The notes under the pieces were generated by a model. The model saw only the letters and a list, made by a program, of their open reading frames with translations, did no database searches and was not told where the DNA came from. DNA of 64,000 nt from the NCBI RefSeq assembly GCF_001194135.2, contig NC_069002.1:3915284-3979283 (forward strand), in the 5' to 3' direction. The position numbers were made by a program, and so were the translations under genes. Shown here piece by piece: positions 2,821-39,000 of this stretch. Source of the stretch: Octopus bimaculoides. Taxonomy: Eukaryota. Positions within the stretch are counted from its first letter, which is position 1. Every line of letters begins with the position of its first letter.

Positions 2821-3926
2821 CATCTTTTAGCTCTTATTTAAATTGATATGCATACACAATTGTACGATTAACAACCTTACATGTGAGAATTTTGCAACGT
2901 TGATAACAGATACAATATTTTTACCAAATTTTGGTATAGATCTATAAATAATGTCAAATAAATTGGTGGGCTTTTGCACAAACTTAATAGTAATGTAAAT
3001 TCCGATATAATGGCAAATCTATAGAAAATTTCATTGAAAACAGAGCATGTAATTTGCTAAAAGTTATGAGGAAACAAAGTCAGTGGTGATGGAAGCCCAC
3101 TTGTTTAGTATGCTTACTTTTTATATATAGAGAGAGAAGAAGAGGTTATAAATTTCGTTTTTTCATTCATGTGACAAAGAACAAAACGAAGTTTACAAAA
3201 CACTATGGAGACAACATAACAAGTGTCGTCACTGGATCAGTTTTTAGACACAAAATAATACATTAAGTCATAAAGAAAATAACAGCAAACACATTTCTTA
3301 TTATCCAAGAGAAGAAACAGAAAAGAGAAAAACATTACGAACCTCAATAATTAATGTAGATTGAATATAACATTTAATTTAATTTTTTTTTTAAATTATT
3401 ATAAGGCTGTGTACGTGTTTGCCTCTGTTCTCTTTCTCACTTTCTCTCTTCTGATAATTACTACAATTAAGCACTTTGGGATTGCTGATGACCGGAGTTT
3501 GGACACTTAGTTACATAGATTGTATCCTAATAAATTATACGATTAATTTCATTTAAGTCTTTGCATTAATTTCAACCAAAACCGATTAAGATAGAAGCAA
3601 CAAAGAATGTTTTTGATTATCTTAGTTTAGTTTTCGTGGTTGTGTAGACCGTGTATTTATATCTCTTTTGATTATTATTATTTTTTTTTTCTAATTTATG
3701 GTACAAATACGAAGAAAATATATGTTAGATATTATAACAAGAATCACACTCGAAAGACCACAAAAGATAAATAATGATCAATAAAAGACGTCTTTTTAAA
3801 TTAACAAAAACATGAATAAATGTAGTTTGCTTCAGTTCATTTCAATTATTTTTCGTAAAGACAGAGAGAGAAAAAGAAAAGGAAGACTAAAATTAGAAAG
3901 CGTGACAAACCCATTAAAATCATACA

Positions 3927-3958
<32 letters not shown>

Positions 3959-4328
3959 CATACTCATACACACATAAACACATACATGTCAAAAGTAAAT
4001 AGACACCTTTCGTTATTCCGTTATATCTGTGCGGACACTATTCCTTGGTACGATGCCCAAACGGGTTAAAATCATTAAAATTTTGCGCAAGGCGTGTCTA
4101 CTAAATACTAGATTACGTATTTAAACGCATCAAACGACATCCTTTGGTTTCTAGAAATAAATCTTTCGAAAACGATGTCTATTTAATTCCGAGATGTCTG
4201 CGCGCTCGCCTGTACATATACACACATTATATATATAGGTGATATATATNNNNNNNNNNNNNNNNNNNNNNNNNNNNNNNNNNNNNNNNNNNNNNNNNNN
4301 NNNNNNNNNNNNNNNNNNNNNNNNNNNN

Positions 4329-4364
<36 letters not shown>

Positions 4365-5093
4365 CCTACAATGTTCAATTATACAGAGAAGAAAGAGGCG
4401 ACTGTCTTCTTTGCATGTCTGATTATATTTCTATATTTCTCTCTTTCGCTGTCTTTCAGTCCCCGATTTTTTTTTTATTCTCATACGCACCTGCTTCTTT
4501 CTTTATCTTCCGGATAAACGTCAGTAAATTAAGGTCTCGTAGTACATTCAGACTGCAACGACGAAGGAATATATCACATCTCGTCTGAGGAAGAACACGA
4601 ACCAGCAAAATGAGAGAGAGATAGACAGATACAAGAAGTGTCAGAGACACGAGACATCTGTTCCAATAAACGTTTACATCACACGCTGACCGGTTGCTTT
4701 CTCTCAGAGGTTAGAAGAACTGTGCCGTAAACCGATTACCTCAGTCGCTCGACTTATTATGAATTTAAAGGAGATAATCTACCACCATATAAACTCTCTT
4801 GCTTTCTTTTTTCATCACACTATTTATAATATTGATTACTATTAGTGTAGGTATATAACATAATATATGTGTGTGTGTGTGTGTGTATATATAATATAAA
4901 TAAATATATATAAATATATATATACAGATGTACACATAATTTTACATACATATATAATTATATATACATACATATATTTATGTATATAAATTATATACTT
5001 ATATAAATATACATATATATATACGTTTACGTATTTGGCAAAAGATGACCATCCCCAAGTATAATAACATATACATAATTATATATATATGTG

Positions 5094-5153
<60 letters not shown>

Positions 5154-5154
<1 letters not shown>

Positions 5155-5405
5155 CATCATCATCATCATTGCGTTTAGCGACTCTTTTCCATGCTGGCAT
5201 GGGTTGCACGGTTTGACTGAGGTCTGGAAAGCCAGCGGCTGCACCAGACTCCAGTCTGATCTGGCAATGTTTCAACAGCTGAACGCCCTTCCTAACACCA
5301 ACCACTCCGAGAGTGTAGTGGGTGCTTTTTATGTGCCACCGGCACAGGAGCCAGTCAGGTGGACCTGGCATCGACCACGTTTGGATGGTGCTTTTTACGC
5401 ACCAT
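5154..5405 (-). mobile_element. Retroposon with (GAT)n 3' tail (family D)
   Basis: (CAT)n followed by TTTCCATGCTGGCATGGGTTG..GCCCTTCCTAACACCAACCACTCCGAGAGTGTAGTGGGTGC. Near-identical sequence at 11414-11670; related pieces at 5905-6300, 8500-8595, 13665-13800, 38720-38870 and 46990-47170. Confidence 0.75.
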
Positions 5406-5674
5406 CTAAACATTGTCGATGCCAGGTCCGACTGACTGTCCTTAATAATTTCTAATTAAGGTACAAGCCAAGCAGTTTATTTTTGGTGACGGTCATGGTG
5501 GAGAAGCGAACAGATGATTATGTCAAAACCCAGTGCTTTATTTTATTGACTCTAAAATGATGAAAGGTAAAAATGACTATGGAGGAATGCGATATCAGAA
5601 TGTGAAGGGCCGGAATAAAGATTGCTTTTCTCGTTTTCACTCGTTGTGTATAAAATTAAAATATAAAAAAAAGT

Positions 5675-5740
<66 letters not shown>

Positions 5741-7035
5741 ATCCAGCAGTGCTTTCAAAGCCACTCTCCTGATGACATGTGGGTACACAGCTGCTGGTAT
5801 ATCATTGAAAACTCTGCAGCTAACAGCTGTTACAATGCAAAGAAACAATTGTTGTGATTTGTGATTAAAGCTTGCTTATTCTATCTTTCTGTTTTATAAA
5901 TTTATATCATCATCATCATCATCTTCATGAAGCAGCTGTTTTCCATGCTGGCATAGGTTAAACTATTCTATGCTTGCATAGATTAGACGGTTAGCTTGTA
6001 TGTCTGCTTTGGCATGGATTCCATGGTCGGATGCCCTTCCTAACGCCAGAGTGTACTGGATGCGTTTTACGTGTCACCGATATGGTACCCCTTTTATGTG
6101 TCATCGGCACGAGTGCCTTTTATGTGTCACCAGCACTGGCCACGACTACGATTTCACTTGGCTTGACGTGTCTTCTCGAACAGAGCAAATCGCCAGAAAT
6201 TTCGGTCAGTTGTCATCGCCTCCGTGAGACTCAGCTGCCGACGATCATGTTTTATTTGTCCACCTCGTCCCTCGTCTTCCTGGGTGAACGCCACATTTGT
6301 AGGTGAAACATTTCTTTTCATAACCGAGTGTTGTTAGTACTCAAAGGTTTCATGCAGGTAAATTTCGCAATTATTACACCGTAGTTTGAATAATATTGGC
6401 AACTCATCCATTTTTCTAATGCTAAATGCGAACGAGATATCAAACAAGGCACGAAGGCAAGTGGGTTAATTATGTGAGTAAAGGGAAGCAATCATTCAGG
6501 AATTGTTATATTGGTTACTTCCCTTGTGGAATTCAATTTTGGTAGCTGCTGACTACACACACAATTCATAGGAATCTTTTTATTAACTTCAATCTGTCCG
6601 AAGTTTCATTACCTTCCTACATTTATTCTAGTTGGCAAAATTTTTCCTTCTTTTTTTTCATCCATATCATACAGCATTATAACTTTTCCACGTCATAGCC
6701 GCATAACTTCATCTCTTTCTCCAGTTCTCAAGTACTACTAAGTTATTTTGAACTCAATTTTGCCTCCTTACTCCCATTGCATCTACAATAATGTCACTCA
6801 CTCATCACCTTTTTTTTCCAGTTTTTGTGAAACATTCTGAGTTCACTGACCACATTTTGATTTTCTTTTTTGAAAAAAAAAAAAGCAAAACAAAGAAAAT
6901 ATAACCCTGACACAAAACAATTGTTGTCAACATAATTTTTAATCACCTCTGTTATTATTTATTCTCTCGTTAATCAGAACAATGTATTTATGTCATTATC
7001 ACCATTAGCATAGTTTCTGACTGAGGTCATATTTA

Positions 7036-7213
7036 CCGTATTTTAATGTGTATAAAGAACCCTTGTAAATAAGGAACCTCCTAATTTGGGGGCTTGAAAT
7101 TTGGGAAAAAGGTTTCGTAAGGGATAATAATACTAGCCATGTATAAGAAACTCCCATATTTTTTTAACCTAATTTTTGACAAAAAAAGGTTCCTTCTACA
7201 TGTTAAAATACAG
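7036..7213. mobile_element. MITE, Tc1/mariner-pogo type (TA flanks)
   Basis: Terminal inverted repeats TA|CCGTATTTTAA...TTAAAATACAG|TA, with inner AAGAACC/GGTTCCTT also inverted. Confidence 0.65.
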
Positions 7214-9274
7214 TACATCTATTTTCAATGTATAGATGCTCTGTCTATTAAAGTATCTTTTGTAGACCATTAAATGAAAGTCAGCAAAACAGATAAGAGA
7301 CGAATTTCCTCCAGTATTGGATACCATGAGAGCACATGGCCTGGTGTTCGTAATTGCAAGATTGTGGTTTCAATTTCCAGACTGGGTGGTATGTTCTTGA
7401 GCATAGCTCCTGTCCACTCAGCTGTGAATGAGCGAACCTACAACAGACTGGTGACCCATTTAGTCACTTATACACCAGGGAATCAGGTAACTAGCTGCCC
7501 CATGGGTTTTAGGGCTTGAGATAGTAATGTTTGGGGTTTGAGGACGATGAGGATAAAACAGATGAGAGATAAATTTCCTCTAATTTTGGGTCATGGAGGC
7601 ACATGGCCCAGTGGTTAGTGGTGTTACACTCACAATTGCAAAATTGTGATTTCAATTCCCAAACTGGGTGGTACATTACATTCTTGAGCAAAACCCTTCA
7701 TTTCACATTGCTCCTGTCCACTCAGCTATAAATGAACGAACTGGTGTCCTGTTCAGGGGAAATGTTGGGATCTCAGTCACTCATGCACCATGGAAACGGG
7801 TTAACTGGCCCCCCAAAGAGTCTTAAAGTGCTAGATTTTGGGGTTCTTTGTTTTTATCATCTACTCAGAGATGGAAAGGCAATGCATATAACCATTTAGC
7901 TTTCAGGGTCTCCAAGAGTTGTTGGAGGAAAGAGAGGAAGTTATTCAAAGACTGGAGACCTGGCCAAGGATATCAAGACTGCAGCAAACCTGAAACTAAG
8001 GAACAAAATGCCATTGAGAGCAAGGAAGTTTGAAGTGTGGAGTCATCAGCATGGGCTTTTAGTGAGATCCTTATGGCCATTCCAAATGCATAAAATGTCA
8101 TTAACCAGAGCAGAGGGAATGAAAATGTGTGCTAACAAAACCCTACCAGAGTGGTTTGGACTGTAGCCTTTTTTTTTGGTTATGTGAGTCTTGATATGTT
8201 GGTGTGATGATAGACTGTGTGTTGTCCCATAATGTCGTTTAAATGACATTTACTTTTACAGAAGTATAATACGGTATTTATAATATTGCATAGTTGATTG
8301 CCAGTAATGTATAGGGGTGTGCTAGAAACAAATGCAGTTCACAATTACATCACTAACAGAAGAGATTAGTTTGACATGAAAAGCAGATTCTGCCAGCTCG
8401 TTGTCTTAAGCATTCCATATATTAATGATGGCAACAAATCACTTTGCATAATGTAAAGAAAGGTAAAGGAGGGGAGGTTGCAAACTGAACAAAACTCCAC
8501 CCTACTAGTTTTCAGTCAAACCGTCTAACCCATGCCAGCATGGAAAATGGGTGCTAAATGATGACGACAATGATGATGATAATGATGATGATGAACTTAA
8601 TATATCAAAATAAAAAAGCAATTACAGTTGTTTTATGAAGCCAGTCTGAATTCACAGTTGTTTTAGGACGTTACTGGGACACAGAGGTGAGGTGGGGGTT
8701 AACTACACAACTGGAAGACAAAAAGTTAAGTTGCATCTGTGTCTGTCTGTCTGTCCTGTAGACAATGGCAAATGCAAGGAGAGGAGGAGGGGGAGGAAGG
8801 GAAAGAAAAAGAATAACAAACCAAGAGGGAGGGAGAGAAGGAAGAAAGAGTAAAAAGAGGGAGAGGAGAACAACAACGAAAAGTGAGGGAGGAGGAGGAG
8901 GAGTGTGAAGTGTTGTGCTGGGGATTGGAGTGTGGAGTAGGAGGAAAAAGAGAAAGGAGGAGGGATGTTTGCGAGGAAGAGGGGATGTGAAAGAGGAAAG
9001 GGAATGTGAAGGAGAAAGGGGGGGGGCGTGGATGAAGAAGAACAGGAGATGATGATGATGATGATGGTGATGTGTAGGAGGGAGAGGAGGACCTTCTGAA
9101 ATGACTCCGATGTCTAATCCTTGACCTGCTACTTCAGCCTCAAATTCCACTTATTGCTAACATTCTGAGAATGCCGCTAACGATGGCTTCAAGAGGTCAG
9201 TTGATTAAATCAGTTCTCATCACANNNNNNNNNNNNNNNNNNNNNNNNNNNNNNNNNNNNNNNNNNNNNNNNNN

Positions 9275-9668
9275 TTTTACTTGTTTCAGTCATTTGACTG
9301 TGGCCATGCTGGAGCACCGTCTTTAGTCGAGTAAATCGACCCCAGGACTTATTCTTTGGATGCCTAGTACTTATTGTATCGGTCTCTTTTGCCGAACCGC
9401 TAAGTTACGGGAACGTAAACACACCAGCATCGGTTGTCAAGTGATGTTGGCGAACAAACACAGACATACATACATATATATATATATAGATATATACATA
9501 TATACGACAGGCTTCTTTCAGTTTCCGTCTACCAAATCCAATCACAAGGCTTTGGTCGGCCCGAGGCTATAGTAGAAGACACTTGCCCAAGGTGCCACGC
9601 AGTGGGAATGAACCCGGAACCATGTGGTTGGTAAGCAAGCAACTTACCACACAGCCACTCCTGCGCCT
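9275..9668 (-). mobile_element. Full-length tRNA-derived SINE (family A) with internal (TA/TG)n tract
   Basis: On the minus strand: head GGCGCAGGAGTGGCTGTGTGGTAAG..GGTTCATTCCC (A/B-box-like), central GCACCTTGGGCAAGTGTCTTCTACTATAGCC, a microsatellite, then the tail GGTGCTCCAGCATGGCCACAGTCAAATGACTGAAACAAGTAAAA. Confidence 0.85.
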
Positions 9669-10065
9669 ACACTATTGTTTTCTTTCCTTAATATTGTTTG
9701 TGCTGTTTTTGTTGTTGTGGTCATCCTTGTTTTTGCTTTGGGGCTTTGTCACTGTCCACTTGTCAGATAAGTGCTTACTCTTGTGTTCTACGCACCCAAT
9801 GAGACAAATAAACCAAAGATGTTGCTTAAGTGTCTCCCACTTGGGAGCAGCCCTTAAGCCTTTAGCATTTAAACCGGTCAGGTCATATCCGTCCCAAATA
9901 TTCAACGTCTTTTGAGTTCAAAACGGCTAGATTTGGCTTCTCAAACCTATCCTACAATGTCATTCTAAAAATAAACATTTACATCATCAAAATCTTGAAG
10001 CTACGAGATAATCTATGATTAAATCAAAACAATGGGAATAAATAAGGATTAAACGTGACAGAAAG

Positions 10066-10372
10066 AAGGCCCGTGGTTTGGGTATTCGGCTCACAATCGC
10101 AAGGTCATGAGTTCAATTCCCAGTGATGCATTGTGTCCTTGAGCAAGACATTTTATTTTCCTGTTGCTCCAGTCCTGCTCAGCTGGCGAAAACGAGTCGT
10201 ACCTCTTATTTCAAAGGGGCCAACCTTGTCACATTCTGTGTCACGCTGAATCTCCTTGAGAACTAATGTTAATGGTATACGTGTCTGTGGAGTACTCAGC
10301 CACTTGCACGTTAATTTCATGAGCAGGCTGTTCTGTTGATCGGATCAGCTGGAACCCTCATCGTTGTTTATG
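10066..10372 (+). mobile_element. tRNA-derived SINE (family F)
   Basis: tRNA-like head (GTGGTTTGGGTATTCGGCTCACAATC..GAGTTCAATTCCC), then TGTGTCCTTGAGCAAGACA..TTGCTCCAGTCC..CTCAGCTG. Related copies at 7310-7440, 7589-7760, 13430-13560, 33770-33910(-) and 60103-60340(-). Confidence 0.75.
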
Positions 10373-10706
10373 AGGAGGTAAACACACCAGTATCGGTTGT
10401 GGGGGATAAGCACAAAAAATGCACACATACATGCATATCACACGTATTTATATACACTATACACACATATATATGCTTCCACAGATTCCGTCTATCAAAT
10501 TCATAAATATCGCACGAGTCAACTCGGGGTAATAAATAAAAGGCACTTGCCCCAGGTGCCCCGATTGCAAAGCGAACTCCTTAAACTACACACACACACA
10601 TTTATATAAATACGTGTGTTTTTCTGCATGTATGTATGTATGTCTATTAGTGCGTGTGCGAACAAATATTATTTTTTTCACGTCTTACCGTAAACGGAAC
10701 TGCAGT

Positions 10707-10722
10707 AATTTGGCGCCAAATT
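10707..10722. promoter_or_regulatory. Palindromic double E2F site upstream of PRIM1 ATG
   Basis: Perfect 16-bp palindrome AATTTGGCGCCAAATT with TTTGGCGC (E2F consensus TTTSSCGC) on both strands, 30 bp before the ATG of a DNA-replication gene. Confidence 0.7.
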
Positions 10723-10752
10723 TCACTTCCAGTGAATACAACAAACTTAATA

Positions 10753-12337
10753 ATGCCTACATCGAGCACATACGATCCTGAGATTTTACCAAATTTATTG
10801 CCAACTTATTACAAACATCTCTTTCCATTTAACCCCTATTGTACATGGCTTCGATATGGTATCGGTAAGTGTGTTTTGAACATGTTTTCTTTTTTAATTT
10901 TAAAGAAATGTTTGGCATCTTGCATCTCGCCGTAATTTTTAGAGTTGATTTGAAACTTTTCAAGTATTTTGTTTTCAGCTATCTCTTTCCTTTTAAATTT
11001 TACTTATATTGTTTGTTCAACTTATATTTTCCGGTGTTTGTTAATCTTGCTTCCCAATCACATGATCTACGTTCAGTCCCACTGCGTGGCACCTTGGGCA
11101 TGTGTCTTCTACTATAGCCTTGGGCCGACCAAAGCCTTGTGAGTGGGATTTCGTAGACAGAATTTAGAGTCTCGAAAGTATAAGCAGCAGAATGTCATTT
11201 AAAACAATTAGTTATCAGGAAACAAAAACGTGCTTTTTGGGGCGGAGGTAAACAATACGTAAACCACCCGTTTTCGGCGTAACATTAACCTTAACACTAC
11301 CCACCGAACTGCTAAGTTTATGGAGATGTAAACACACTAGCACCGGTTGTCAAGCGGCGTGGCTGGGGGAACAGATACAAACACACACACACACACGTAT
11401 ATATATATATATATCATCATCATCATTTAACGTCCGCTTTCCATGCTAGTATGGGTTGGACGATTTGACTGGGGACTGGCGAACCAGATGGCTACACCAG
11501 ACTCCAATCTGATCTGGCAGAGTTTCTACAGCTGGATGCCCTTCCTAACGCCAACCACTCCGAGAGTGTAGTGGGTGCTTTTTACGTGCCACCGGCACGA
11601 GGGCCAGTCCAGCGGTACTGGCCACGCTCAAATGGTGTTTTTTACGTGCCACCTGCACAGGAGTCAGTCCTATATATATATATATNNNNNNNNNNNNNNN
11701 NNNNNNNNNNNNNNNNNNNNNNNNNNNNNNNNNNNNNNNNNNNNNNNNNNNNNNNNNNNNNNNNNNNNNNNNNNNNNNNNNNNNNNNNNNNNNNNNNNNN
11801 NNNNNNNNNNNNNNNNNNNNNNNNNNNNNNNNNNNNNNNNNNNNNNNNNNNNNNNNNNNNNNNNNNNNNNNNNNNNNNNNNNNNNNNNNNNNNNNNNNNN
11901 NNNNNNNNNNNNNNNNNNNNNNNNNNNNNNNNNNNNNNNNNNNNNNNNNNNNNNNNNNNNNNNNNNNNNNNNNNNNNNNNNNNNNNNNNNNNNNNNNNNN
12001 NNNNNNNNNNNNNNNNNNNNNNNNNNNNNNNNNNNNNNNNNNNNNNNNNNNNNNNNNNNNNNNNNNNNNNNNNNNNNNNNNNNNNNNNNNNNNNNNNNNN
12101 NNNNNNNNNNNNNNNNNNNNNNNNNNNNNNNNNNNNNNNNNNNNNNNNNNNNNNNNNNNNNNNNNNNNNNNNNNNNNNNNNNNNNNNNNNNNNNNNNNNN
12201 NNNNNNNNNNNNNNNNNNNNNNNNNNNNNNNNNNNNNNNNNNNNNNNNNNNNNNNNNNNNNNNNNNNNNNNNNNNNNNNNNNNNNNNNNNNNNNNNNNNN
12301 NNNNNNNNNNNNNNNNNNNNNNNNNNNNNNNNNNNNN

Positions 12338-12384
<47 letters not shown>

Positions 12385-15300
12385 ACACATAACGGACTTC
12401 TTTCAGTTTCCGTCTACCAAATCCACTCACAAGGCTTATGTTGGCCTGAATATTTGAGTAGAATCATGAGCCCAACACATTAACCACTAAGCCATGTGCC
12501 TCCACTGAGAGTGACATTGTAATTTATTAATCGAACGCAACATAGATATTTTCCCTCTCGTACACATCAGGAGAAATATGCTCCCACAGAGAAACAGAGA
12601 GAGAAAATGAGAGAAACATAAAAAGGTTTTATGTCAGTTTAAGTCAGTGTCAAATCAGCGATGCCAAAACTGCTGTGCCAAAACTTCTCATAACTTCTAG
12701 TGACCTGTCTGAGCACATGAACACATTTTATGGGTGATCTTACTCCTATACAATTATTACATATGAAGATTTCTTTCTCCATCAAATTGCTTTCTACCTT
12801 AAGTAAATATAACTACAATATGTCTCTTGCAGCCCAGACTAAGCAAAACCATCAAAGCAAGCAGTTTTGTGGCAGAAGAGAAAGAATTGGTCTTTGATAT
12901 TGATATGACAGATTACGATGACGTCAGGAGCTGCTGCTCGTAAGATTTTCCTCATTTTTGTTATTATTATTATTATATACATTTTTTTTTTGTCTTTGAT
13001 TATTGGTTTCAGTCATTGGCCATGTTGGGGTACCGCTTTCAAGGCTGTTAGTCAATCATATTGATTCCAGTACTTAGTCTAGCCTGCTGCTTATTCCGTG
13101 TTTCATTTTGACCAAATTTCCCTTTTTTTTTGAGGGAAGTAACTCGATACACCCGTAACATATACAGGAACATGTGGACATTTATACACATACATACACA
13201 CACACTTAATCTTTTTTTTTTCCAATGTTTCAGTGGTGCCCAGATTTGTAAGAGATGTTGGCCCCTAATGATTATAGCTATCAAAATCCTGGACAAAGCA
13301 TTAAGAGGTAAGTGTCTGGTTGTTTTTGTAACTCTTAAGGTTTGTGGATTTGAAACAAAACAGTACATTGTGATGCTGTATGGTGTGGGGGAATGTGTGG
13401 AGACTGAATAAAATGGGGCAAGCATCCTCTGTTCTTAGTGGTTAGAGTGCTAGGCTCAGGATCATGAGATTGTGGTTTCAATTTCTGGACTGAGCAATAC
13501 ATTGTGTTCTTGAGCAAATTACTTCATTTCATGTTGCTCCAGTCCACTTAGCTGGCAAAAAATGAATAATCCTGTACTGGGCCGGCATCCCATCCAGACG
13601 GGAAACATGTGCCAAGGAAAACAGGAAACTGGCAACTTAGTTTTTTTAAATTTTTTTTTTTTAGCTACACCAGACTCCAATCTGATCTGGCAGAGTTTCT
13701 ACAGCTGGATGCCCTTCCTAACACCAACTACTAAGAGAGTGTACTGGGTGCTTTTACGTGTCACCCGCACGAAGGCCAGTCAGGAGGTACTGGCAACAGC
13801 CACACTTGAAATGGTGTAAAATTTGTTTCAAACTTATTTCATTCTTTAAATTATGTGTATTTGTCTTTTCTCAGATGATTTCGGTTTTGACCATTTGCTG
13901 TGGGTCTATTCTGGGCGCCGAGGTGTTCACTGTTGGGTGTGTGACAGTACAGCACGCAAACTCGGCCCAAGTGGCAGAGCTGCTATTGCAGAATATCTAA
14001 GTATTGTCAAGGTTTGTAAATGTTATTTTGAAACTGTTGTTGTTGATTGGGACCCCGGGACCCCAAGTCATAAGCCTGGTCCAGCAGCCTTTATTAATTA
14101 ACCCTTTAGCATTTAGATTAGTTTGTCAAATGTAAAGGGTAAAAGACCCCCTGGTAGAGAGGAGCTGAAGGAAGCCTGCCATGTGCATAGATGTGTGTGT
14201 CTGTGTTTGTCCAATCACCACTGCTTGACAACTAGTGTTCGTATGCTTACGCCCCCAAAAGGAGACCCCTATAGAATGGGTACAAGGCTTTAAAAAATAA
14301 GTACTGTTGATGATTTGATCAACTACAAATTCTTTAGTAAAAAAATTAAAGATCACATGAATACAAAAATGTATTCCTTAATAGAAAAAAATAGTACAAA
14401 CAAAATATTACTTTGAATTCTAATTTCAAACATTTTATTTTTTTTATTTTTCCTTCAGTTTTGACTGTTTAACATATCAATCATTAGAAGGAGAAAAAAT
14501 TACATGTTAGATTTAACTGCTAATCTCTTGGTGGATGCCTGTTAATTCAAAGTTTATTTCAGAGATTTATGGCATACGCTAACTCTTTTAACTGCATGAT
14601 TAAATTTCATGGTTATTCCTGCGATGATATTAATGATCCACCACAAAACAGAATTTATATTTTCTGCTTCTGAAGTACTTTTTCAATACGATTTTTATAT
14701 CCGCCACTAATTTATTTGATTCTTGCTCTGTAAAGAGAAATTTGATGACGCATGTGAAAAAAAAAAAGTTTAAGAAAATCCGAAAAGGTTTTTTTCCAAA
14801 TCCGTGTATTAAAACCATTTGCCGCAGTTAACACTAATAAAATTTTGAGCGGGGATATCCACTCCGTGTTCAAACGATTAATGTCCCAAGACCAGGGGAC
14901 ATAATTACTCTATAGGTCGTGTGATTATCAGTTTTCATCATGAAGACTGAAGTAGTTCATCAGTCTAGTGAATTAGCTCCCCTCTAGTGTTAACTGTCTG
15001 AAATATAACCTCTGTCTTTGGAGGCGATGTTAACGAAATAGAAGAAACTCAATACGGAAGGGCTGATAGTTTTGTATATGGAACATGTTGAAAATAATCT
15101 GCAGCATTTTGTAATAGTATTATAGTCAAGACTAGTTGTTTTATATCTTACTTTGATTGTGGCCTTATTTCTGAACTAACGTGTGTGTGTGTGTGTATAT
15201 TATACATGTATGCATAATACAAACACACACACACACATATATGTATGTATATCTTGTGATGTGGTGCACATCCAAGGTATTCGTTCAATGTAGATACAGT

Positions 15301-17018
15301 GTGGTTCAACAAAGATGGATGAATAAAACAAGTCCTTGGATTAACTCTGTGTGTGTGTGTGTGTGTGTATACATATGTGCAATATTTACCATGTAAGAAT
15401 TTTTATGCAATACATTAAAAGAATTCAAGTGTGGAAAGGAAAGTAGATATATTTTTTAGTGATTGATTTTTAAGTACAAGAAGGTGAGGGAGTCAACTTA
15501 AATTTGAGATGGCATTTTGTACTTGAGTGAATGTGGTGTATTTAAGAGAGGGTGCAGAAAAGTTCCTGGCTTTAAGGGTATTGCAAAAGCCCCAGTTGGA
15601 GACCCAACCTTCCAAGTTCTTTTACAGGGTTCAGAAAAACTGAAGAACCACTACAATAAGTGTGTGGATCCTAGAGGGGAATATGTTGTATAAAATCATA
15701 ATTAACTGATCCTCCTGTAATTTTCTTTTACCCAGAGCCAGGAAGTTTCCAGCATCCCCTCATATATGTGTGTGTGTGTGATAATAACATGTAGATAAAT
15801 GTGCATGTACACACCATGTGGTATTTTTCTTTCTTAATCTTATTCCTAGGGTGGTGAAAACAATGTGAAGAAAGTAGTTTTGCAGGAGCCAATCCATCCA
15901 TTCATTGAGTGAGTAAAAGTTCTGTCTTCTTTTATTGTTTGTTCAGTATAATGATTCCCATTGCTAGGACATGCAAATAGACAGAGTGGTGCCAGAACCT
16001 GTTGAAGATTTGGTAGGTGGAAACTGAAAGCAGCCCATTTTATATGTATATGTATGTACATATGTTGTGTGAGTGTGTTTGTGTCTCTCCTTGTCATGAC
16101 AGTGTGTGATAGTTGTAAATGAGAGTCACTGTCATACAAGCAGTGTCATTCATTTCCAGTATTCTGTGAAAACATGTCTGGCCATGGGGAGACACTACCT
16201 TGGTTGGAAACAGGTGAGGGTTGACTACAGGGAGGTGCATCTGGCTGTAGAAAATCTGCCCAAGTAAATTCCATCTTAGCCATACATGCTTAGAAAATTA
16301 AACACTAAAAATGATAATATCCACGCAGTAGGACTGAACTCTTACCACACAGCCATGCCTGCACCTATATACATACAATGGGCTTCTTTCAGTTTCCATC
16401 TCCCACATTTACTCACAAGACTTTTGTCAGCCAAAGACTATTGTCGAAGACACTTGCTCAAGGTACTACAGTGAGACTCAACCTGAAAGCCCACATCACA
16501 GACGAAATATAATCACAAAACGCTTAACCGAACCAAGAAAAGGTTCTTTAATTAAAAAAAAAAAACTGGGTGTTTGTTGTTTTGTTTTTTTTCCTTTCCT
16601 GTGTGTTTTTTGGTCTCGTTTCCAAAATATGTTCACTCAGAAATTATCTTTCATCTAGTTTGCATTTTGTTTCTTTACAGGAGATCAATTGAAATTATTG
16701 AAGAATTCTTTGAAGGTTATGCCCTTGTTGATCAGGATATTTTGCGCAGTGAAAACATTAGTAAAATTATCGATTTGATTCCAGAAAGAAATATCCTTTT
16801 TTATTTCTTTTTTTTTTTTCATCTTCATCGTTTAATGCAGTAGTTGAACAAATCGTCACCAGTGCTTTTTTTTTTTTTTTTTTTAGCCTGGTACTTATTC
16901 TATCAATCTCTTTTTGCTGAACCACCAAGTTATGGGACATACACCAACACTGGTTGTCATGGGTAGGGTGCAGTGAAACAAATACACACACACATGCACA
17001 AATATATATATACATACA

Positions 17019-17053
<35 letters not shown>

Positions 17054-20000
17054 NNNNNNNNNNNNNNNNNNNNNNNNNNNNNNNNNNNNNNNNNNNNNNN
17101 NNNNNNNNNNNNNNNNNNNNNNNNNNNNNNNNNNNNNNNNNNNNNNNNNNNNNNNNNNNNNNNNNNNNNNNNNNNNNNNNNNNNNNNNNNNNNNNNNNNN
17201 NNNNNNNNNNNNNNNNNNNNNNNNNNNNNNNNNNNNNNNNNNNNGAGATGGTCTCAGAGAAAGAATGAACTCCTCCTCATCCTGTTGATCTATGATTGAA
17301 GAATGGGTGACTGGGAAGCAAGCTTCTTAAACACTCACCCACCCCTGCACTCACCCACCCCTTTTGTTTCGTTACTGTTTCTGCACCTCTTTGACTTGTC
17401 TACGTTAATTCTCTTTAATGAGTCACATAGAAATGATAATCTCCAGAAAATCCTGTTGTCTGCAAACAATTCCATATCCAGGTGGAATCTCCTGACAAAA
17501 GAACTGGAAAGGCCAGTAAGTAGCAGTACCATTTCTTATGTATAAATTAAGTACCAGTTGCATACTGGGGTCAGTCTAATCAACTGGCCCTCTTTTCCCC
17601 CAAATTTCAGTCCTTGTGCCTATAATAGAAAGTATTATTAGTATTAGTATTAATTTATATATGCACCTACACAATGGGCTTCATTTAGTTTCCATCCAGA
17701 CTAACAAGGCATTTGTCAGCCCAGAGTAATACCAGAAAGTGCTGCTTAGTGAAACTGTTCCTAAAACAGCATGTTTGTGAAACAAACCCCTTAAACACTG
17801 ATATACAAATGCGCGTGTGTGTGTTTTTCATATTAGGTTTATGTTCTTTCAGGGTGTCCATGCCGGTCGGGTGTTGAAAGAGATTATGCTGCAATATTGT
17901 TATCCTCGTCTTGATGTCAACGTCAGTAGAGGTGTGAACCATTTGTTAAAGTCACCGTTCAGCGTCCACCCAAAGACAGGTATGTTTGTTCTGTATATGA
18001 ATTGCAAGGGAGGAACAGGAAATTTCTCACTTAGATTAATCTCTTTGACTGTTTATCAGAACCAGAAAATAATTCTTGTCCCTCCAAGACAAGGTAATTT
18101 TAGAAAACATAATCATTCTAATGCTCATGGTCTGATCTGTCAAGTATCATCATCATCTGTTTCACATTTTTCTCATTGCTAGTGTATATATATAAATACA
18201 GGGTGGCCCCAAAAACAGGTTTACAATTATCACGTAGGCATTTTAAATGTCTTTTAAAACATTTTATAACACTTACAAAATTAACTAAATTAGCATAGAA
18301 TAATGGTTTCATATTTTATGATTAAGATCTAAACTGTTAATGCAAAAGAGATATTTGAATATCTATAAACCTATTTTTGGGCCACCCTGTATATAATACA
18401 ACAAGCTTCCTACAGTTTCTGTTCATGATTTCCACTCAGAAAATAATGATCAACTCAAGGCTACAATAGAAGACACTTCCTCTTAGTGACATGTTGTGGA
18501 AACAAACTCAAAACCACATAACCATGAGATAGGCAGTACAGCAAAGCTTTTTGTCTCAGTTCAGATCCCTGTGCGGCCAACTTTTGAAGTCTTCTTTGAA
18601 CTGTCAGATGTCAGTTTACCTGGAAAAATACAATGCAGGTATTAACAAGGAGAGTTAAAATTAGTTCATGCAAGATTTCACAGCTCTAGCATCACTTCTT
18701 CATGGTCAGCCTATGAACTTTTCAGCCCACCTTCGTACAGCTTCGTCTGCTTCAAGATTCAGCGTTCCAAAAAAAGAAATTACTAAGCAAAATAAAAATA
18801 TATGGCTTATGTTTATCTGCAGGTCGAGTTTGTGTCCCAATAGATCAAACAGATGTGGAAAACTTTGATCCGTTTGCAGTTCCAACCATCTCGTAAGTAA
18901 AAGATACATACACTAATCTTCTCCTTTCCAAATTTAAGACCTGTTCTCTCTTCTTCCCTCATGCAGTCACTGCCTGTCCTACTCAATACAGATAATTCCG
19001 ATTGACAAAATATCAAATTGTCTAAGTTTGTCTTCCTTTTCTCTAGCCAACTGATTGATGAAATAAACACAACTTCTGAGAATGAAGAAAATTTGAAGAT
19101 CAAAGGTGAGTCTTCACTTTCTCTTTCTCTCTCTCTCTCTGCTGTGGAATTTCACAAATATAATTCTTGCATTTCTCTTGAATCCTCTTCTTCGACTCAA
19201 TTTTCTGTTTTTAGATTATAAGAGAACTTCTTTGAAGGAAGGTGTGGAGATATTTGAAAATTTCTTGAAACAACTGAAGAAAACTTGGGAAGGTGCTATG
19301 ATCAAAGAGAGTGGTATGTCTTATTTTACAAAATTTTTCCTTAGAATGTGTGTGTTTGATTATTGATAGGTGCAAGACCTGACTGTGGTTAAAATGCTTG
19401 CTTCCCAACCATGTGGTCTTAGGTTCAGTTCCCGCTCTATCTCTCTCTCTCCTCTGGACCACTTTTTTCTCACTCATCACCTCCTCTCGCTTTGTCCACC
19501 TCAGCTATTGCCCATCACTCTCTTCTTGTCTCTGTCCCCTAATAACTGTCCTTACCATCCGACTCTTGCTCTTTTCACCTACCCACTCCAGCCTTCTGCT
19601 GTTCCTTTTCTCAATCACTTTACCCAAACAAAAGTATGCATCTCAGGTTGCCGACTACTCTCTCTGCTTACTGTTGTAAAAGGCTCTTCCCTCATCATGT
19701 CCCAGTGCCATGATGGAAAGCCTCCCTTCTCCGTGCACCAGCTAAAGTGATTGCAAGTGAGCAAAGGTGAAGTAGGGTTGAGCAATCTCTTAGTCCTCCC
19801 TCATTGAGGATTTGATAACCTCTCTTGTGTGGGTGCCAAGTGAAAATTCATTCACTACACAATGTGAAGTGGATGGTAAAAGAAGGGAGAAAACATGGGG
19901 TTGTGAGATCTTTTTAGTCCTGTGTCACCAAGGCCTTATCAATTTCTCTAACACAAAGTTATTATCAGTTCAAATATGCTTGGAGTACCTGCAACAAAGC

Positions 20001-20119
20001 CATTTAGCATGTTTTGTCATGGAGAAAATTATACACACCATCAGATTATTGGACTAGTTAAATTTTCTTTTTCTTTTCTTTTATTTTTTCTTCTTTCAGA
20101 TCTAAGAATGGAGCTGTAA
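10753..20119 (+). CDS. PRIM1: DNA primase small (catalytic) subunit, multi-exon
   Basis: Exons: 10753-10864, [exon 2 not visible, probably in N-gap 11686-12337], 12833-12939, 13234-13307, 13875-14011, 15850-15908, 16681-16790, 17427-17515, 17853-17979, 18823-18892, 19047-19105, 19215-19313, 20100-20119 (TAA). The translation has the primase motifs [77 protein letters not shown] and DYKRTSL. Phases are consistent from exon 3 to the stop. Splice sites are GT-AG except one AT-AC intron. Confidence 0.96.
11686..12337. other. Assembly gap (652 N) between (TA)n tracts
   Basis: N run. Other gaps: 4250-4328, 9225-9274, 17054-17244, 22733-22945, 29856-29865, 33005-33014, 52042-52750. Confidence 1.
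15545..15762. mobile_element. Mariner-derived non-autonomous element in PRIM1 intron
   Basis: TIRs GAGGGTGCAGAAAAGTTCCTGGCT / AGCCAGGAAGTTTCCAGCATCCCCTC. The internal remnant [12 protein letters not shown] (15655-15693) resembles the mariner transposase C-terminus KC...GDYVE. Confidence 0.7.
16791..17426 (+). other. U12-type (minor spliceosome) AT-AC intron in PRIM1
   Basis: The 5' end ATATCCTTTT (16791-16800) matches the U12 AT-AC donor consensus. A branch-like TTCTCTTTAAT lies at 17409-17419, followed by terminal AC at 17425-17426. This join restores the frame (PERN|RNDNLQK). Confidence 0.88.
18199..18389. mobile_element. MITE with CAGGGTG termini and TA flanks (Tc1/mariner-type) in PRIM1 intron
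   Basis: TA|CAGGGTGGCCCCAAAAA ... TTTTTGGGCCACCCTG|TA. Confidence 0.8.
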
Positions 20120-20998: not shown

Positions 20999-21602
20999 CA
21001 CTGAGCATTTACAAATGGCTTTGAGCTCAAATCTTACAGGATCTTCAACAAATTACCAAGTAGGTCTGTTAGTCACTTTAATGTTAAAATGTTCCTTTCG
21101 TAAATTACTTCCATTTAGGTGCAAGCATGGCTGTGTGGTTAAGAAGCCCACTTTTGCAACCACATTGTTTTGGATTCAATCCTACTGCAATGTACCGTGA
21201 GCAAATGTCTTCTACTATAGCCTTGGGCCAACCAATGTCTTGTAAATGAATTTGGCTGTCAGAAACTGTGCAGAAGCCTATTGTACACATATATATATAT
21301 ATATATGTATGTATGTATGTATGTATACAAGGGGATACCAAAAAGTAACCGGAAGCATTCTCTGTGGGACAAGCCCATTGTAGTTCAGGCTTCTGCCACT
21401 TGATGTGACCCTCAAGCATCAGTCTGCTGACCAAAGGTGTTGGCTGAAGTTTTACTGCCATGTAATGTGTGTGTCTGTCTGTCCCCCCACCATCAATTGA
21501 CAACCGATGTTAGTGTGTTTACATCCCCGTAACTTAGCAGTTCGGCAAAAGGGACCGATTGAATATGGCAGGTTTAAATGATAAAGGATTAAGAGTTCAC
21601 AG

Positions 21603-22487: not shown

Positions 22488-22693
22488 GGCGCAGGAGTGG
22501 CTGTGTGGTAAGTAGCTTGCTTACCAACTACATGGTTCTGCGTGACACTTTGGGCAAGTGTCTTCTACTATAGCCTCGGGCCGACCAAGCCTTGTGAGTG
22601 GATTTGGTAGACGGAAACTGAAAGAAGCCCATCGTATATATGTATATATATATATGTATGTATGTGTATATATACACCCATATATATATATAT

Positions 22694-22986: not shown

Positions 22987-23130
22987 TATATATATATGTA
23001 TATACGACGGACTTCTTTCAGTTTCCGTCTACCAGATCCACTCACAAGGTTTTGGTCATCCCGAGGCTATAGTAGAAGACACTTGCCCAAGGTGCCACGC
23101 AGTGGGACTGAACCAAGAACCATGTGGTTC
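22488..23130. mobile_element. Two family-A SINE halves in inverted orientation around a (TA)n tract and N-gap
   Basis: A + copy at 22488-22633 and a - copy at 23005-23130 flank (TA)n and gap 22733-22945. Confidence 0.75.
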
Positions 23131-23776
23131 GAAAGAAGCCCATCACATATGTGTGTGTGTGTTTATTTGTGTTACCTTGTCTTGACGTTGCGTGAGGTCA
23201 TTTGTTTCCAACATTCAGTGAAAACATTTCTAAATATGGGTTGAAATCTAACCTTGCTTGTAAACAGGTGAAGGTAGATAACAGGGAAGTGTACCTGACC
23301 ATAGAAAATCTTCCTCAACGAATTCCATCTTACCCATGCAGGCATAGAAAAGTGGACGTTAAGTGATGATGAAGATGATATATACATAGATAGATGGATT
23401 GATCGCCATCAGTTTCAATGATGAATATTTGAAATCTATGAACTGAATTAGCACGTAAGCGGTTGAGCATCGTTCGCAGCCCTTTTTGTGTACGCCCAAC
23501 GGCTAATTTCCAACCACAACCAGTAAGACACATGAGGCTGGAGGTGATACGTCAATGCTCTACCATGTGTCATTACACCGTGTATTATTACAGTTTAAAT
23601 TATAAATACAATCAGTGCTACAGTATTCTATACACTTCCTATCGACCCAGTTTTACTCCACAAGGTATGATTAGAGAAAATGACATTTGCTTGAGTTGCC
23701 GTGCAGTGCTATCGAAACTAGACACTGTGAAACAAACTTCGTAACTATTCAGCCATACAGCCCGTACCCTCACAAC

Positions 23777-24080: not shown

Positions 24081-25366
24081 TTCTCTTTTTTTCCCTCTCT
24101 ATATTAATAATTTCAATAATCCTAAACATATACAAATGATTTTACAATTATATGATACGGATTGAACCAGTGGAATTCCTTGGATTATATATAATCCCTA
24201 ATGAGGATTTAATTTCCTCGAATTAACTATATATATATACGACAGGCTTCTTTCAGTTTCCGTCTACCAAATCCACTCACAAGGTTTTGGTCAAAACCAT
24301 GTGGTTGGGAAGCAAGCTTCTTACCACAGCGCTAATAATTTACAAGTCCCGCGTCAAACTGTCATCGTTCCTTCAACTTCTAAGGAAGAATGTCGAACTT
24401 TTGTACATAATTCTATGTACTGTACATGCAGCTTTGATGAGTTGTCGTGCATCTGAGCACTATACACAATAATTTCATTATTATTATTATTATTACTTTT
24501 GAGATAAGGCTCTTGTTTCTAGCGAGTTGAGTGACTCTTAAGAGGCATGTGTATGTTGTCTGTGTGCGCGCGCGTGTGTTATATGATTTGTCACCTGTAC
24601 GTTATTGAAACAACTGTGAACGCTGAAATGAATGTTAATACCAACTCCATCCTTCACTTGCCACTCACATATTATATATATTTATAGGGTGAGTGGACAA
24701 ACGAAAGAAAGAGGCACTCAACGCAATTAGTAGGAGTTACATATATTATTTAAAAGTTTGATGCGGCCTAGCCCGATGAAACTTTAAGCCTCCGAAACTT
24801 TAAGCTGCATAGGGCAACTGATTAAAATAATATATATATATATATAATGTGTGACTTAGATTCATATCATTACTGCTTTAGGGGCCTCAGTACTTAATCT
24901 AATCAAGCACATGTTCACGTTGACATTTTATAGACGAAGTTGTAAAACCCACGCTTTCACACACACACACATATATATATATATATGATTTTTCTCAACG
25001 TGGGGAAGCGAGAACGGAAGTTGGAGACGGAAATGAAATAAAAAGTTTTTCTTGTGTTCTTCCTCAATCTTTTACTTTCTACTTATATACATTTGTGAAC
25101 CCACATACATAATACAATATATCGGCTTTTGTATATACATTCATATATATATATATATAGGTCATATATACAGATGTATGTAGTAATATAAACACATGCA
25201 TAACTTAATGTCACGGACCAGTTGTAATTTTTAATTACAGTAAATTAATCATAAGACTTATGTATTGAGTACACCGCACTTCGTTAACCAACTTACCACA
25301 CACACACACACTGAATATCACAATAATGTTCCGTTCCATTTTCTTTTCAATATCAAATCATCGAAA

Positions 25367-36000: not shown

Positions 36001-39000
36001 AACCGTTTGAAGTGTTAAAAAGATAGATAAACTATCGATAGTTTAATAACACCATATATTTGGAGCACATCTGTTGAATTTTGTCATAGTGTCTATGGAA
36101 AATGCATAATTAATGCATTGGGATTAATTAGCTCTTTTCAGATTGGCAATGACATCATCTTGACTCTTTTATTCTGGGTTGCTGCAGAAGCAAGTGTATA
36201 ATCATGTTTATGCCATTGATTCCCTTCTGTATGGAATCTATAGAACATTGGGAAATGGAGCTGCTATTTCTGAGACCCAGCTGAAGACTATTAAAGACCA
36301 TTATTTTTGTTTATTGTAGACATTTGCGTAGTCCTTATCCAAATTGTTAGTTTGCACTCTTGTACTAAGCTAGGACGCTACTCCCTTGAGGGATTCAGTT
36401 GAACAAATCAACCTCAGTCTCTATTTCAAGTGTGGTATTTATTCAGTCGGTCTCTTTTTGCTAAACTACTGTTAGGGATGTAAACAAACCTCAGTTGTCA
36501 AGCAGACACGTGCGTTTCCACCCAGTTTATTCCTACTAGATCCACTCGAGGTGTTGGTCAGCCTGTGGCTATACAAGAAGACACTGGTCAACCTGCTGTG
36601 CAGTTACACTGACCCCCATACCCTGTGTCTACCAAGCGAATTTTAAACCAAGCCGGCTTCTGCCTTTGTAGATATATTCCAAATTTTCACAACACCAGTG
36701 CGACCTGAATAGGATTATTCTGTTGGATTGTACCATACCCTCTAGTCCAAACATATTTGGTTAGTAATTTGGTGCTTAGAATTCAGTATATTGTCTTTAA
36801 GAGCTACCAAAGACTTAATACTTAAAACTACTTGAGAACGGTGCTTCTAGATTTCCCAGTCTTCCATAAGTTGTTTCCATGGTAATAAACCATGGCCAAC
36901 CAATAATCCATTTGTTCACATTTATCTTCATGTTCCAATAGTTTTTTTCTTTTTTTGTTAGTGATTTTCTTTTGTGACAAGTTCAGAGCTGTCTTTTTCA
37001 TTAAATAGATTGAATCTGTCCTTGGTCATCTTTCTTGGATATCATTTAGCTGGACTAAATAACTATCATCTGCCAAATTCCCAAACATTGTGACTAGCTT
37101 ATATCAGTTTTAACTTTAGACAGACATACATGTGGCTCTGTGGTCAAGTAACTTACTTTCCAGCCATGTAGTTTCAAGTTCAGTCCCACTGCATGGCAAC
37201 TTGGGTAAATGTCTTCAACTATAGTTCGAGCTGACAAGCCTTGAGTAAATTTGGTAGAGGGAAAGTGAAAGAAGCTTGTTTTATGCACACACACACGTTT
37301 TCTTTTTGATGTCATGATAGTTATAAACAGGTGTTATTGTCATGCAAGCTGTCATTTCCAATTATCCGTGAAAGTATATTTGGTCATGGGGAAATATTAC
37401 CTTGCTTGGAAACGGGTGAGGGTTTGGTAACAGAATGGACATTTTACTGTAGAGCATATGATGCATCAGTGAATTCCATTTGACCCATGCAGGCATGGAA
37501 AAGTCTGTACACTCTCTTGGTTAGATTTTTTATCAATTGTGTTGTTTTCTGATCTATATCAGCATCGCAAATAAACTGAAGGAAAACAAGGTTTTACAAA
37601 GATCCTTAATATAGTAATTCTATATGGAATTATACTTCCTTGTAACTCGCAGTCTCAATGTAGGGAATTAATTCTGGGTCAGTTGGAAACCTGTGAGTAA
37701 AACAACTTAAAATGTATCTTAAAATGTATTTTCTAACTTTTTCAGCCTGAGCTATTAAAGAAATTATCTGACATCTTAAAACATGGAGGGAATAGTCCAG
37801 TGGCCCGTATGCAAGCCGGTCTACAGCTCAAAAATGCTGTTTATTCCAAGGATCCAGCAATTAAAACCACTTACCAACAGCGATGGCTCCAGTTTAACGA
37901 AGAAATACGAGTATATATAAAGAAAAATGTGAGTTGAAGGTTTTTTGTTTTTCTAATAAATTATGGTCTTGAAATCTTGCAAATAATATTGAGATTGTTT
38001 TACATTTGTTTGTGTTGATAGGAGATTAGTTTTCCAAAACTAATATACTGTTTAAACAGATGCCTCTAGATTTTTCTTGGCTATTTTCTGTTGAATTCAG
38101 CTTTTCCAAGGTTCCTTTTAAAAATTTTAGCTCTTGATATAAATCTACACATTTAAATTCATATTTTGAAGACAGAACATGTGACAGTAAATGCACCCCA
38201 TCGAAGAGGGCAGCAACTTAGCTTGGATAGAGAGGATTCCTAAGACTTGGTGCAGTAAACTCTGTAGTGCTGATGGCACAATAAAATGCACTCTGTCCAG
38301 GTCATAAAGTAGCTGGCAAGAAGAAGGATATTCAGCTATAAAAAGTATGGCATATACAAGTGATGTTTTTCTGTTTGGATGAAGAACCATGAGAAGTTGC
38401 ATGATGAAATAGATCTAACCCACAACAGGCAGCGGAGGGGACTGAATTGGACATAAAATGAGGATTAAATTCCAGCTAAACAGATCTTATTCATCACACC
38501 CTACCATCTTAAATGATGAGCAATGTAAGGTAATATAATTTTATGGCTGGATGCTAACGCAAAATATTACCAATCCAAACAGCACTGAATTGATGATATA
38601 TAAAATATACAGAGGTCGCCAATGTTGGAATATTTATCATAAATCAGCTGGATGTTTTAAAAGCTGCTTTATAAGAGAAAAGTGTTCTCTATTGAAGTGT
38701 ACTCTGTCTAAACTCTGTATTGGTTTAATGTTTTGGCAGGAAGGGCATCCAGCCATAGAAACCATACCATGATAGGCAACTGGGGTGTGAAAAGCTCCCT
38801 GTTTGCCAGTTATATATCAAACCATCGAACCCATGCCAGCATGGAAAGTGGATGTTAAATGATGATGATAGTTTTAGTTGCTTGTATTTTGTTGATATAT
38901 TAATGCTTTCTAGTCATTGTTTCCAATGTTATTAAACTGGTATCTTTTATGCTTCTTGCAGGTTTTGGAGTCATTAGGGACTGAAACCATTCGTCCAAGT

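Follow-up and report, generated by a model that had tools for sequence, protein, structure and literature searches.

The DNA considered here is a stretch of 64,000 nucleotides (nt) of the genome of Octopus bimaculoides (contig NC_069002.1, positions 3,915,284 to 3,979,283 of the forward strand), referred to as the window, and it carries PRIM1, the gene for the small subunit of DNA primase. The segment 16791-17426 is, with a high degree of confidence, intron 7 of this gene, a U12-dependent AT-AC intron in phase 1 that descends from an intron already of the U12 type in the bilaterian ancestor and that persists in the PRIM1 genes of human and mouse. A preliminary description made from the letters of the window had proposed a U12-type AT-AC intron in PRIM1, and the proposal is borne out by a perfect U12 5' splice site, the reproduction of the RefSeq protein, the AT-AC termini of the orthologous introns and the MIDB entry for human and mouse. 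All its coordinates (exon 16681-16790, AT donor at 16791, GAGTC-AC end at 17426 and next exon from 17427) proved correct, both by reading and by slicing the sequence with a script.

Directly after exon 7 the sequence reads ATATCCTTTT (16791-16800). The matrices used for scoring were derived from 76 human minor introns (MIDB Table S2), PRIM1 being left out, and the one for the 5' splice site was trained on 32 human AT-type minor introns (MIDB). On this human-derived matrix the 5' splice site of intron 7 reaches 15.3 bits (training median 15.0), and only 3 of the 123,974 12-mers of the window score as high (top 2.4e-5). The shorter motif ATATCCTT is not rare by itself, with 8 copies in the window vs 3.4 expected; the copy of intron 7 is placed exactly at the end of the primase homology. 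The seven further exact ATATCCTT sites of the window are found at 7966, 21724, 29148, 38324, 47271, 47767 and 53145.

At its other end the intron closes with TTCTCTTTAAT (17409-17419), GAGTC (17420-17424) and AC (17425-17426). The terminal AC restores the reading frame, and the resulting peptide is identical to the RefSeq protein XP_014768165.2 and collinear with the orthologues. When 16790 is joined to 17427, a 66-residue peptide is obtained that is collinear with residues 214-275 of human PRIM1 (E-value 4e-9) and that also matches the primases of O. sinensis and Argonauta; its alignment shows a one-residue gap at the junction against human PRIM1 and none against the proteins of O. sinensis and other cephalopods. 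It matches, too, the protein of another cephalopod, which is encoded by an uninterrupted open reading frame on Logan contigs of approximately 2.4 kilobases (24 contigs read; 75 index blocks listed), and the presence of an intronless frame on these contigs implies a spliced messenger RNA (mRNA) that encodes the collinear peptide. In the octopus gene, the AT-AC join leaves an open frame all the way from exon 3 to exon 10. The other readable introns of the gene (8 of 8) are GT-AG with good consensus sites, and AT-AC is found only in intron 7.

The top database match is the PRIM1 protein of O. sinensis (91% identity), in whose 90% cluster XP_014768165.2, the O. bimaculoides protein, is included. 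The latter is identical to the exon composite over 257 residues and contains the junction peptide LIPERNRNDN. Its locus (GCA_001194135.2, CM046622.1:3923139-3938402) equals the window at 15264 of 15264 positions, and the RefSeq gene range (3001-12264 of locus L009) corresponds to 10856-20119 of the window. Since the locus is identical to the window and the protein carries the junction, the 16790/17427 join is already annotated in RefSeq. The AT-AC intron of O. bimaculoides PRIM1 is an ordinary one, already known and already annotated correctly, and it has little importance beyond annotation quality. The warning in the preliminary description that such introns are often mis-annotated by GT-AG gene finders does not apply to this gene, in which the real defect of the annotation is that exon 2 has been lost in another assembly gap.

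The junctions of the orthologous introns were solved exactly from annotated proteins and their genomic loci. An intron of the form ATATCCTTT...AC, in phase 1 and at the same alignment column, is present in O. sinensis, Argonauta hians, Pecten maximus, Diadema antillarum and Oreochromis, the teleost junction being displaced by one codon through an indel located there. The human minor intron (chr12:56741838-56742986, ENST00000338193) is catalogued with the 5' splice site AAA/ATATCCTTT and the branch site TGTTCCTTAATG, and the mouse one (chr10:128022973-128023582) with AGA/ATATCCTTT and TGCTCCTTAATG, the slash marking the exon end (MIDB; PMC6717393 Tables S1, S2). The likeness to the octopus intron covers the gene, the position in the protein, the AT-type 5' splice site and the identical intronic bases; the last exon bases, AAA and AGA, are compatible, as in tilapia, with a junction in phase 1 that directly follows the conserved VPE, and the branch-site 12-mer ends in TTAATG in human, mouse and octopus alike. 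The vertebrate genes differ in that the junction lies one codon earlier than in octopus, with a one-residue indel at the junction. The 5' boundary of exon 7 equals, in position and phase, the human exon 6/7 boundary at c.638 (PMC7608753), and, since exon 6 ends at c.638, the human intron is inferred to be number 7 as well.

The PRIM1 gene of Haliotis asinina also has a phase-1 intron at the identical codon column (locus L010, approximately 13273-13573). It is a 301-nt intron of the U2-like GT-AG kind (GTTAGG...TGTTGTATTTAG, with the 5' end GTTAGGTC) that is devoid of U12 motifs, and from its sequence it is likely the product of a minor-to-major conversion, a process that has been described for introns (PMC10639083). 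The expectation that the orthologous intron is of the U12 type elsewhere holds, then, for O. sinensis, Argonauta, Pecten, Diadema, Oreochromis, human and mouse, but not for Haliotis; no cnidarian PRIM1 was present among the 120 homologues listed. This distribution shows that the minor intron dates at least to the bilaterian ancestor, with AT-AC kept in cephalopods, a bivalve, an echinoderm and vertebrates. Such broad conservation makes the PRIM1 intron a reliable marker for checking how gene finders handle U12 introns, and in practical terms Haliotis offers a clean case of a likely conversion from minor to major type at this position.

The branch site of intron 7 is weak and ambiguous, with three candidates that lie 8, 18 or 32 nt before the 3' splice site and whose possible branch-point residues are A17417/17418, A17407/17408 and A17394, respectively. 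The proximal one, proposed in the preliminary description, has U in place of C at two positions of the consensus UCCUUAAC (UCUUUAAU), and both would presumably still pair with U12 small nuclear RNA (snRNA) as G.U wobbles. The element is identical in O. sinensis. Its 12-mer, TTCTCTTTAATG, scores 6.2 bits and falls within the bottom 1% of the 76 human minor introns, whereas the human and mouse sites (TCCTTAAT) reach 10.9 and 10.7 bits; the TCTTTAAT core occurs, too, in the catalogued minor introns of mouse Ranbp17 and human CAPN8. The distal candidate, ACCTCTTTGACT, scores 8.1 bits (12th percentile of human minor-intron branch sites). Scoring with U12 matrices, recommended in the preliminary description, gives a strong 5' splice site and a weak branch site, always with the reservation that the matrices are human-derived.

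The orthologous introns vary in this region. Argonauta and Pecten keep the canonical CCTTAAC, within ACCTTAAC at 11 nt and GCCTTAAC at 10 nt from the AC, respectively, whereas the element is degenerate in both Octopus species, which have ACGTTAAT or ACATTAAC 18 nt away and, besides, TCTTTAAT at 8 nt and TCTTTGAC at a distance of 32 nt; in Diadema, too, there is a pair of candidates (20 and 9 nt). By our own reading of the intron 3' ends, ACGTTAAT seems to align with the canonical ACCTTAAC of Argonauta.

Several of these observations, and others, weigh against the assignment of intron 7 to the U12 class. The branch site is weak on the human-derived matrix, and its best proximal candidate lies 8–9 nt from the AC, under the optimum branch-to-3' splice-site distance of 11–13 nt (PMC6717393), with the others at 18 and 32 nt. 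The short distance had been noted with caution in the preliminary description; it is real and the caution was justified (nothing useful on branch distances was found in PMC8848931). The pyrimidine fraction near the 3' end is 0.65 (positions -22 to -3), so that it is not evident that a polypyrimidine tract is lacking, and the RefSeq junction in XP_014768165.2 comes from a predicted gene model. A scan of the whole window at the Rfam gathering threshold gave no match of any kind, and so no snRNA gene, a result that is uninformative either way. Regarding the pyrimidine content, the same measure gives 0.5–0.7 in the orthologous AT-AC introns and 0.6 in the U2-type intron of Haliotis, and since the values are alike in both types, it does not discriminate between them.

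These weaknesses bear mainly on the notion that intron 7 has AT-AC boundaries but is removed by the major (U2-dependent) spliceosome. U2-type AT-AC introns share the AT and AC termini and have an ATAAGT-like 5' splice site, without the ATATCCTT motif at the 5' end and without a TCCTTAAC branch site. The octopus intron, in contrast, has the ATATCCTT motif perfectly and the TCCTTAAC branch site weakly. Its 5' splice site is not a U2-like one lacking ATATCCTT; it is a perfect ATATCCTTT, the sequence recognized by U11 and U6atac, unlike the ATAAGT-like site. In addition, its human and mouse counterparts are scored as minor introns, and Prim1 of the mouse figures as a candidate among the genes whose U12 introns are affected in Zrsr1/2 mutants (PMC7312986). 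Although several AT-AC introns are handled by the major spliceosome (PMC6717393), and although the weak match at the branch site and the fairly pyrimidine-rich sequence upstream of the 3' end would suit it, removal of intron 7 by this machinery is considered very unlikely.

If intron 7 follows the established U12 pathway, U11 snRNA would pair with ATATCCTTT at its 5' end, U12 snRNA would pair with the TCCTTAAC-like branch site near its 3' end, and U4atac/U6atac.U5 would catalyse the joining of 16790 to 17427. If the intron were retained, translation would end at the TAG of 16841-16843, the stop that the preliminary description had predicted and that is indeed reached in frame, and nonsense-mediated decay of the transcript would be predicted.

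The preliminary description also suggested that the intron acts as a throttle, that is, that the output of the primase small subunit would follow the activity of the minor spliceosome. In mouse, the minor intron of Prim1 is retained in bone, marrow, spleen and thymus, with a mis-splicing index of 0.12–0.31 (PMC6717393 Table S5), and Prim1 is the candidate already mentioned in Zrsr1/2 mutant embryos (PMC7312986); in octopus, a retained intron would bring a stop after 51 nt, and its branch site is weak. On the other hand, the support comes entirely from mouse data, much of the evolution of minor introns has been argued to fit neutral processes (PMC10639083), and Haliotis carries a U2-type intron at the same site, a replacement which indicates that at least one mollusc can do without the U12 type. 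By analogy with mouse, such a control may exist in octopus, but it is a tentative proposal that we regard as rather doubtful.

A more specific version of unproductive splicing can be imagined from the 3' end of the intron. The AG at 17429-17430, inside exon 8, is 12 nt from A17418, and its use shifts the frame and leads to a stop within exon 8. Given that TCTTTAAT is 8–9 nt from the AC but 12 nt from this AG, and that the choice of the 3' splice site in U12 introns is mainly governed by distance, AT-AG splicing is possible. The ancestral branch site, still present in Argonauta as ACCTTAAC (11 nt from the AC), might have decayed in the lineage of Octopus while a new TCTTTAAT arose nearby, and part of the transcripts might be spliced AT-AG; if this were true, the frameshift and the stop in exon 8 would constitute a lineage-specific, unproductive-splicing brake that limits primase. 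This scenario is clearly improbable.

A different question is whether the main mRNA could use a GT-AG (or GC-AG) pair instead, the AT-AC join being a coincidence of homology. The GT-AG, GC-AG and AT-AC pairs that keep the frame without a stop were enumerated over 16690-16860 and 17246-17510, and 134 combinations keep it, among them the in-frame GT-AG/GC-AG pairs 16726/17423, 16760/17319, 16760/17502 and 16839/17431. In-frame canonical pairs are therefore within reach, and the assertion of the preliminary description that only AT-AC keeps the frame must be narrowed: it is valid for the nearest GT-AG pair (GT 16761-16762 with AG 17429-17430), which removes 34 nt and shifts the frame, and not for the more distant ones. 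Every in-frame canonical pair, however, costs the protein 20 or more conserved residues or adds no fewer than 15 that the orthologues do not have, and the 66-residue peptide that matches the orthologues is obtained only from 16790/17427. The pair formed by the GT at 16761 and the AG that precedes 17447 is not in frame either, and this GT is absent in O. sinensis.

An annotated isoform of O. vulgaris, CAI9738940.1 (359 residues), does bypass the minor intron, skipping 47 residues by joining GA/GTACTT in exon 7 to CCAG/G in exon 8. With O. sinensis DNA used in place of O. vulgaris DNA, its sites were located at 12492/13623 of the O. sinensis locus (L001), equivalent to 16704/17482 of the window. 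The window has GAATTC where O. sinensis has GAGTAC, so the GT-AG route of CAI9738940.1 is closed in O. bimaculoides; the isoform is either real or an annotation artefact. Neither its GT nor the GT at 16761 is common to both octopus species, whereas ATATCCTTT is conserved up to the vertebrates, and the full-length proteins of both RefSeq and O. vulgaris use the AT-AC join. A canonical pair in the main mRNA is accordingly held to be extremely unlikely.

Finally, the intron as assembled contains 191 unread bases, and it could be argued that the gap hides an exon or a mis-join and that the intron is an artefact of the assembly, particularly since another gap of PRIM1 (11686-12337) does appear to swallow exon 2. 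The reference for this comparison is the O. sinensis intron, which measures 989 nt and has no N (locus L001, 12579-13567). The left flank of the gap (16600-16845 and 16841-17013) and the right flank (17245-17538, 92.9% identity) are collinear with this single gap-free intron, in the same order and orientation. The O. sinensis stretch opposite the gap (L001 13179-13384) has 206 nt vs 191 N, contains stops in two of the three frames and belongs to an interspersed repeat of which the window has 12 copies (67–88% identity), several of them adjoining other gaps; the gaps thus probably mark collapsed repeat copies. Because the flanks are collinear and the protein alignment runs across the junction with no residues missing, no coding sequence is hidden and the frame is independent of the gap. 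An artefact of this kind has next to no probability, and in practice the gap 17054-17244 does not compromise the 16790/17427 junction. The features of the U12-dependent AT-AC intron, together with the exons, the repeat copies and the orthologous introns, are collected in Table 1.

Table 1. Coordinates in the window of PRIM1, its intron 7 and associated elements, and the ends of the orthologous introns.
Feature	Position	Strand	Basis or remark
PRIM1 (DNA primase small subunit), Octopus bimaculoides	10753..20119	+	tblastn of PRIM1 against the window, splice-site reading, open composite frame
PRIM1 exons, 5' part	10753-10864; 12833-12939; 13234-13307; 13875-14011; 15850-15908	+	exon 2 missing, after 10753-10864
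PRIM1 exons, 3' part	16681-16790; 17427-17515; 17853-17979; 18823-18892	+	more 3' exons from ~19214
Exon 7, 110 nt	16681..16790	+	36 residues and first base of next codon; AG 16679-16680 upstream
Intron 7, U12-type AT-AC, phase 1	16791..17426	+	636 nt as assembled, including 191 estimated N
U12 5' splice-site motif ATATCCTTT	16791..16799	+	same nine intronic bases as human and mouse PRIM1
In-frame TAG upon intron retention	16841..16843	+	read-through translation from exon 7; stop 51 nt into intron
Assembly gap (N), wholly within intron 7	17054..17244	.	most likely hides one interspersed-repeat copy
Distal branch-site-like TCTTTGAC	17388..17395	+	32 nt from 3' splice site
Degenerate element ACGTTAAT	17402..17409	+	18 nt from 3' splice site; 6/8 consensus matches; <2 bits
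Proximal branch-site-like TCTTTAAT	17412..17419	+	choice of the preliminary description; two A residues 8-9 nt from 3' splice site
3' terminal AC	17425..17426	+	direct reading and orthologue comparison
Exon 8, 89 nt	17427..17515	+	completes codon N, then 29 residues; GTAAGT directly 3'
Repeat copies	near 114-227, 9504-9685, 11046-11162, 12397-12446, 16381-16488, 21117-21279		
Repeat copies (continued)	near 22537-22635, 23004-23135, 24239-24287, 37133-37279, 41843-41897, 56003-56144		
O. sinensis orthologous intron			5' end ATATCCTTTTAC; 3' end CTTTCTTTAATGAGACAC
Argonauta hians orthologous intron			5' end ATATCCTTTTAA; 3' end CTACCTTAACCACCCGCCAC
Pecten maximus orthologous intron			5' end ATATCCTTTGGT; 3' end AGCCTTAACAATGAGTAC
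Oreochromis orthologous intron			5' end ATATCCTTTTCT; 3' end TTGACTTTATATATTAC
Diadema antillarum orthologous intron			5' end ATATCCTTTTAA; 3' end GTCCTTGACTGACCTTTGACATGCTTAC

With respect to the surroundings of the gene, a Pfam search of six long stop-to-stop open reading frames outside PRIM1 gave no match, and no neighbouring gene was identified in the window. Within PRIM1, nothing in the letters read from the window matches exon 2 (in O. sinensis, approximately residues 38-90 of the protein), and this exon appears to be located in the gap of 652 N between exons 1 and 3 (11686-12337), the sole place left for it. The RefSeq model XP_014768165.2 begins at the ATG of 10856 (MVS, encoded by the last 9 nt of exon 1), which is spliced directly to exon 3. 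The model is N-terminally truncated, with 319 residues vs 406, because exon 2 was lost in that gap.

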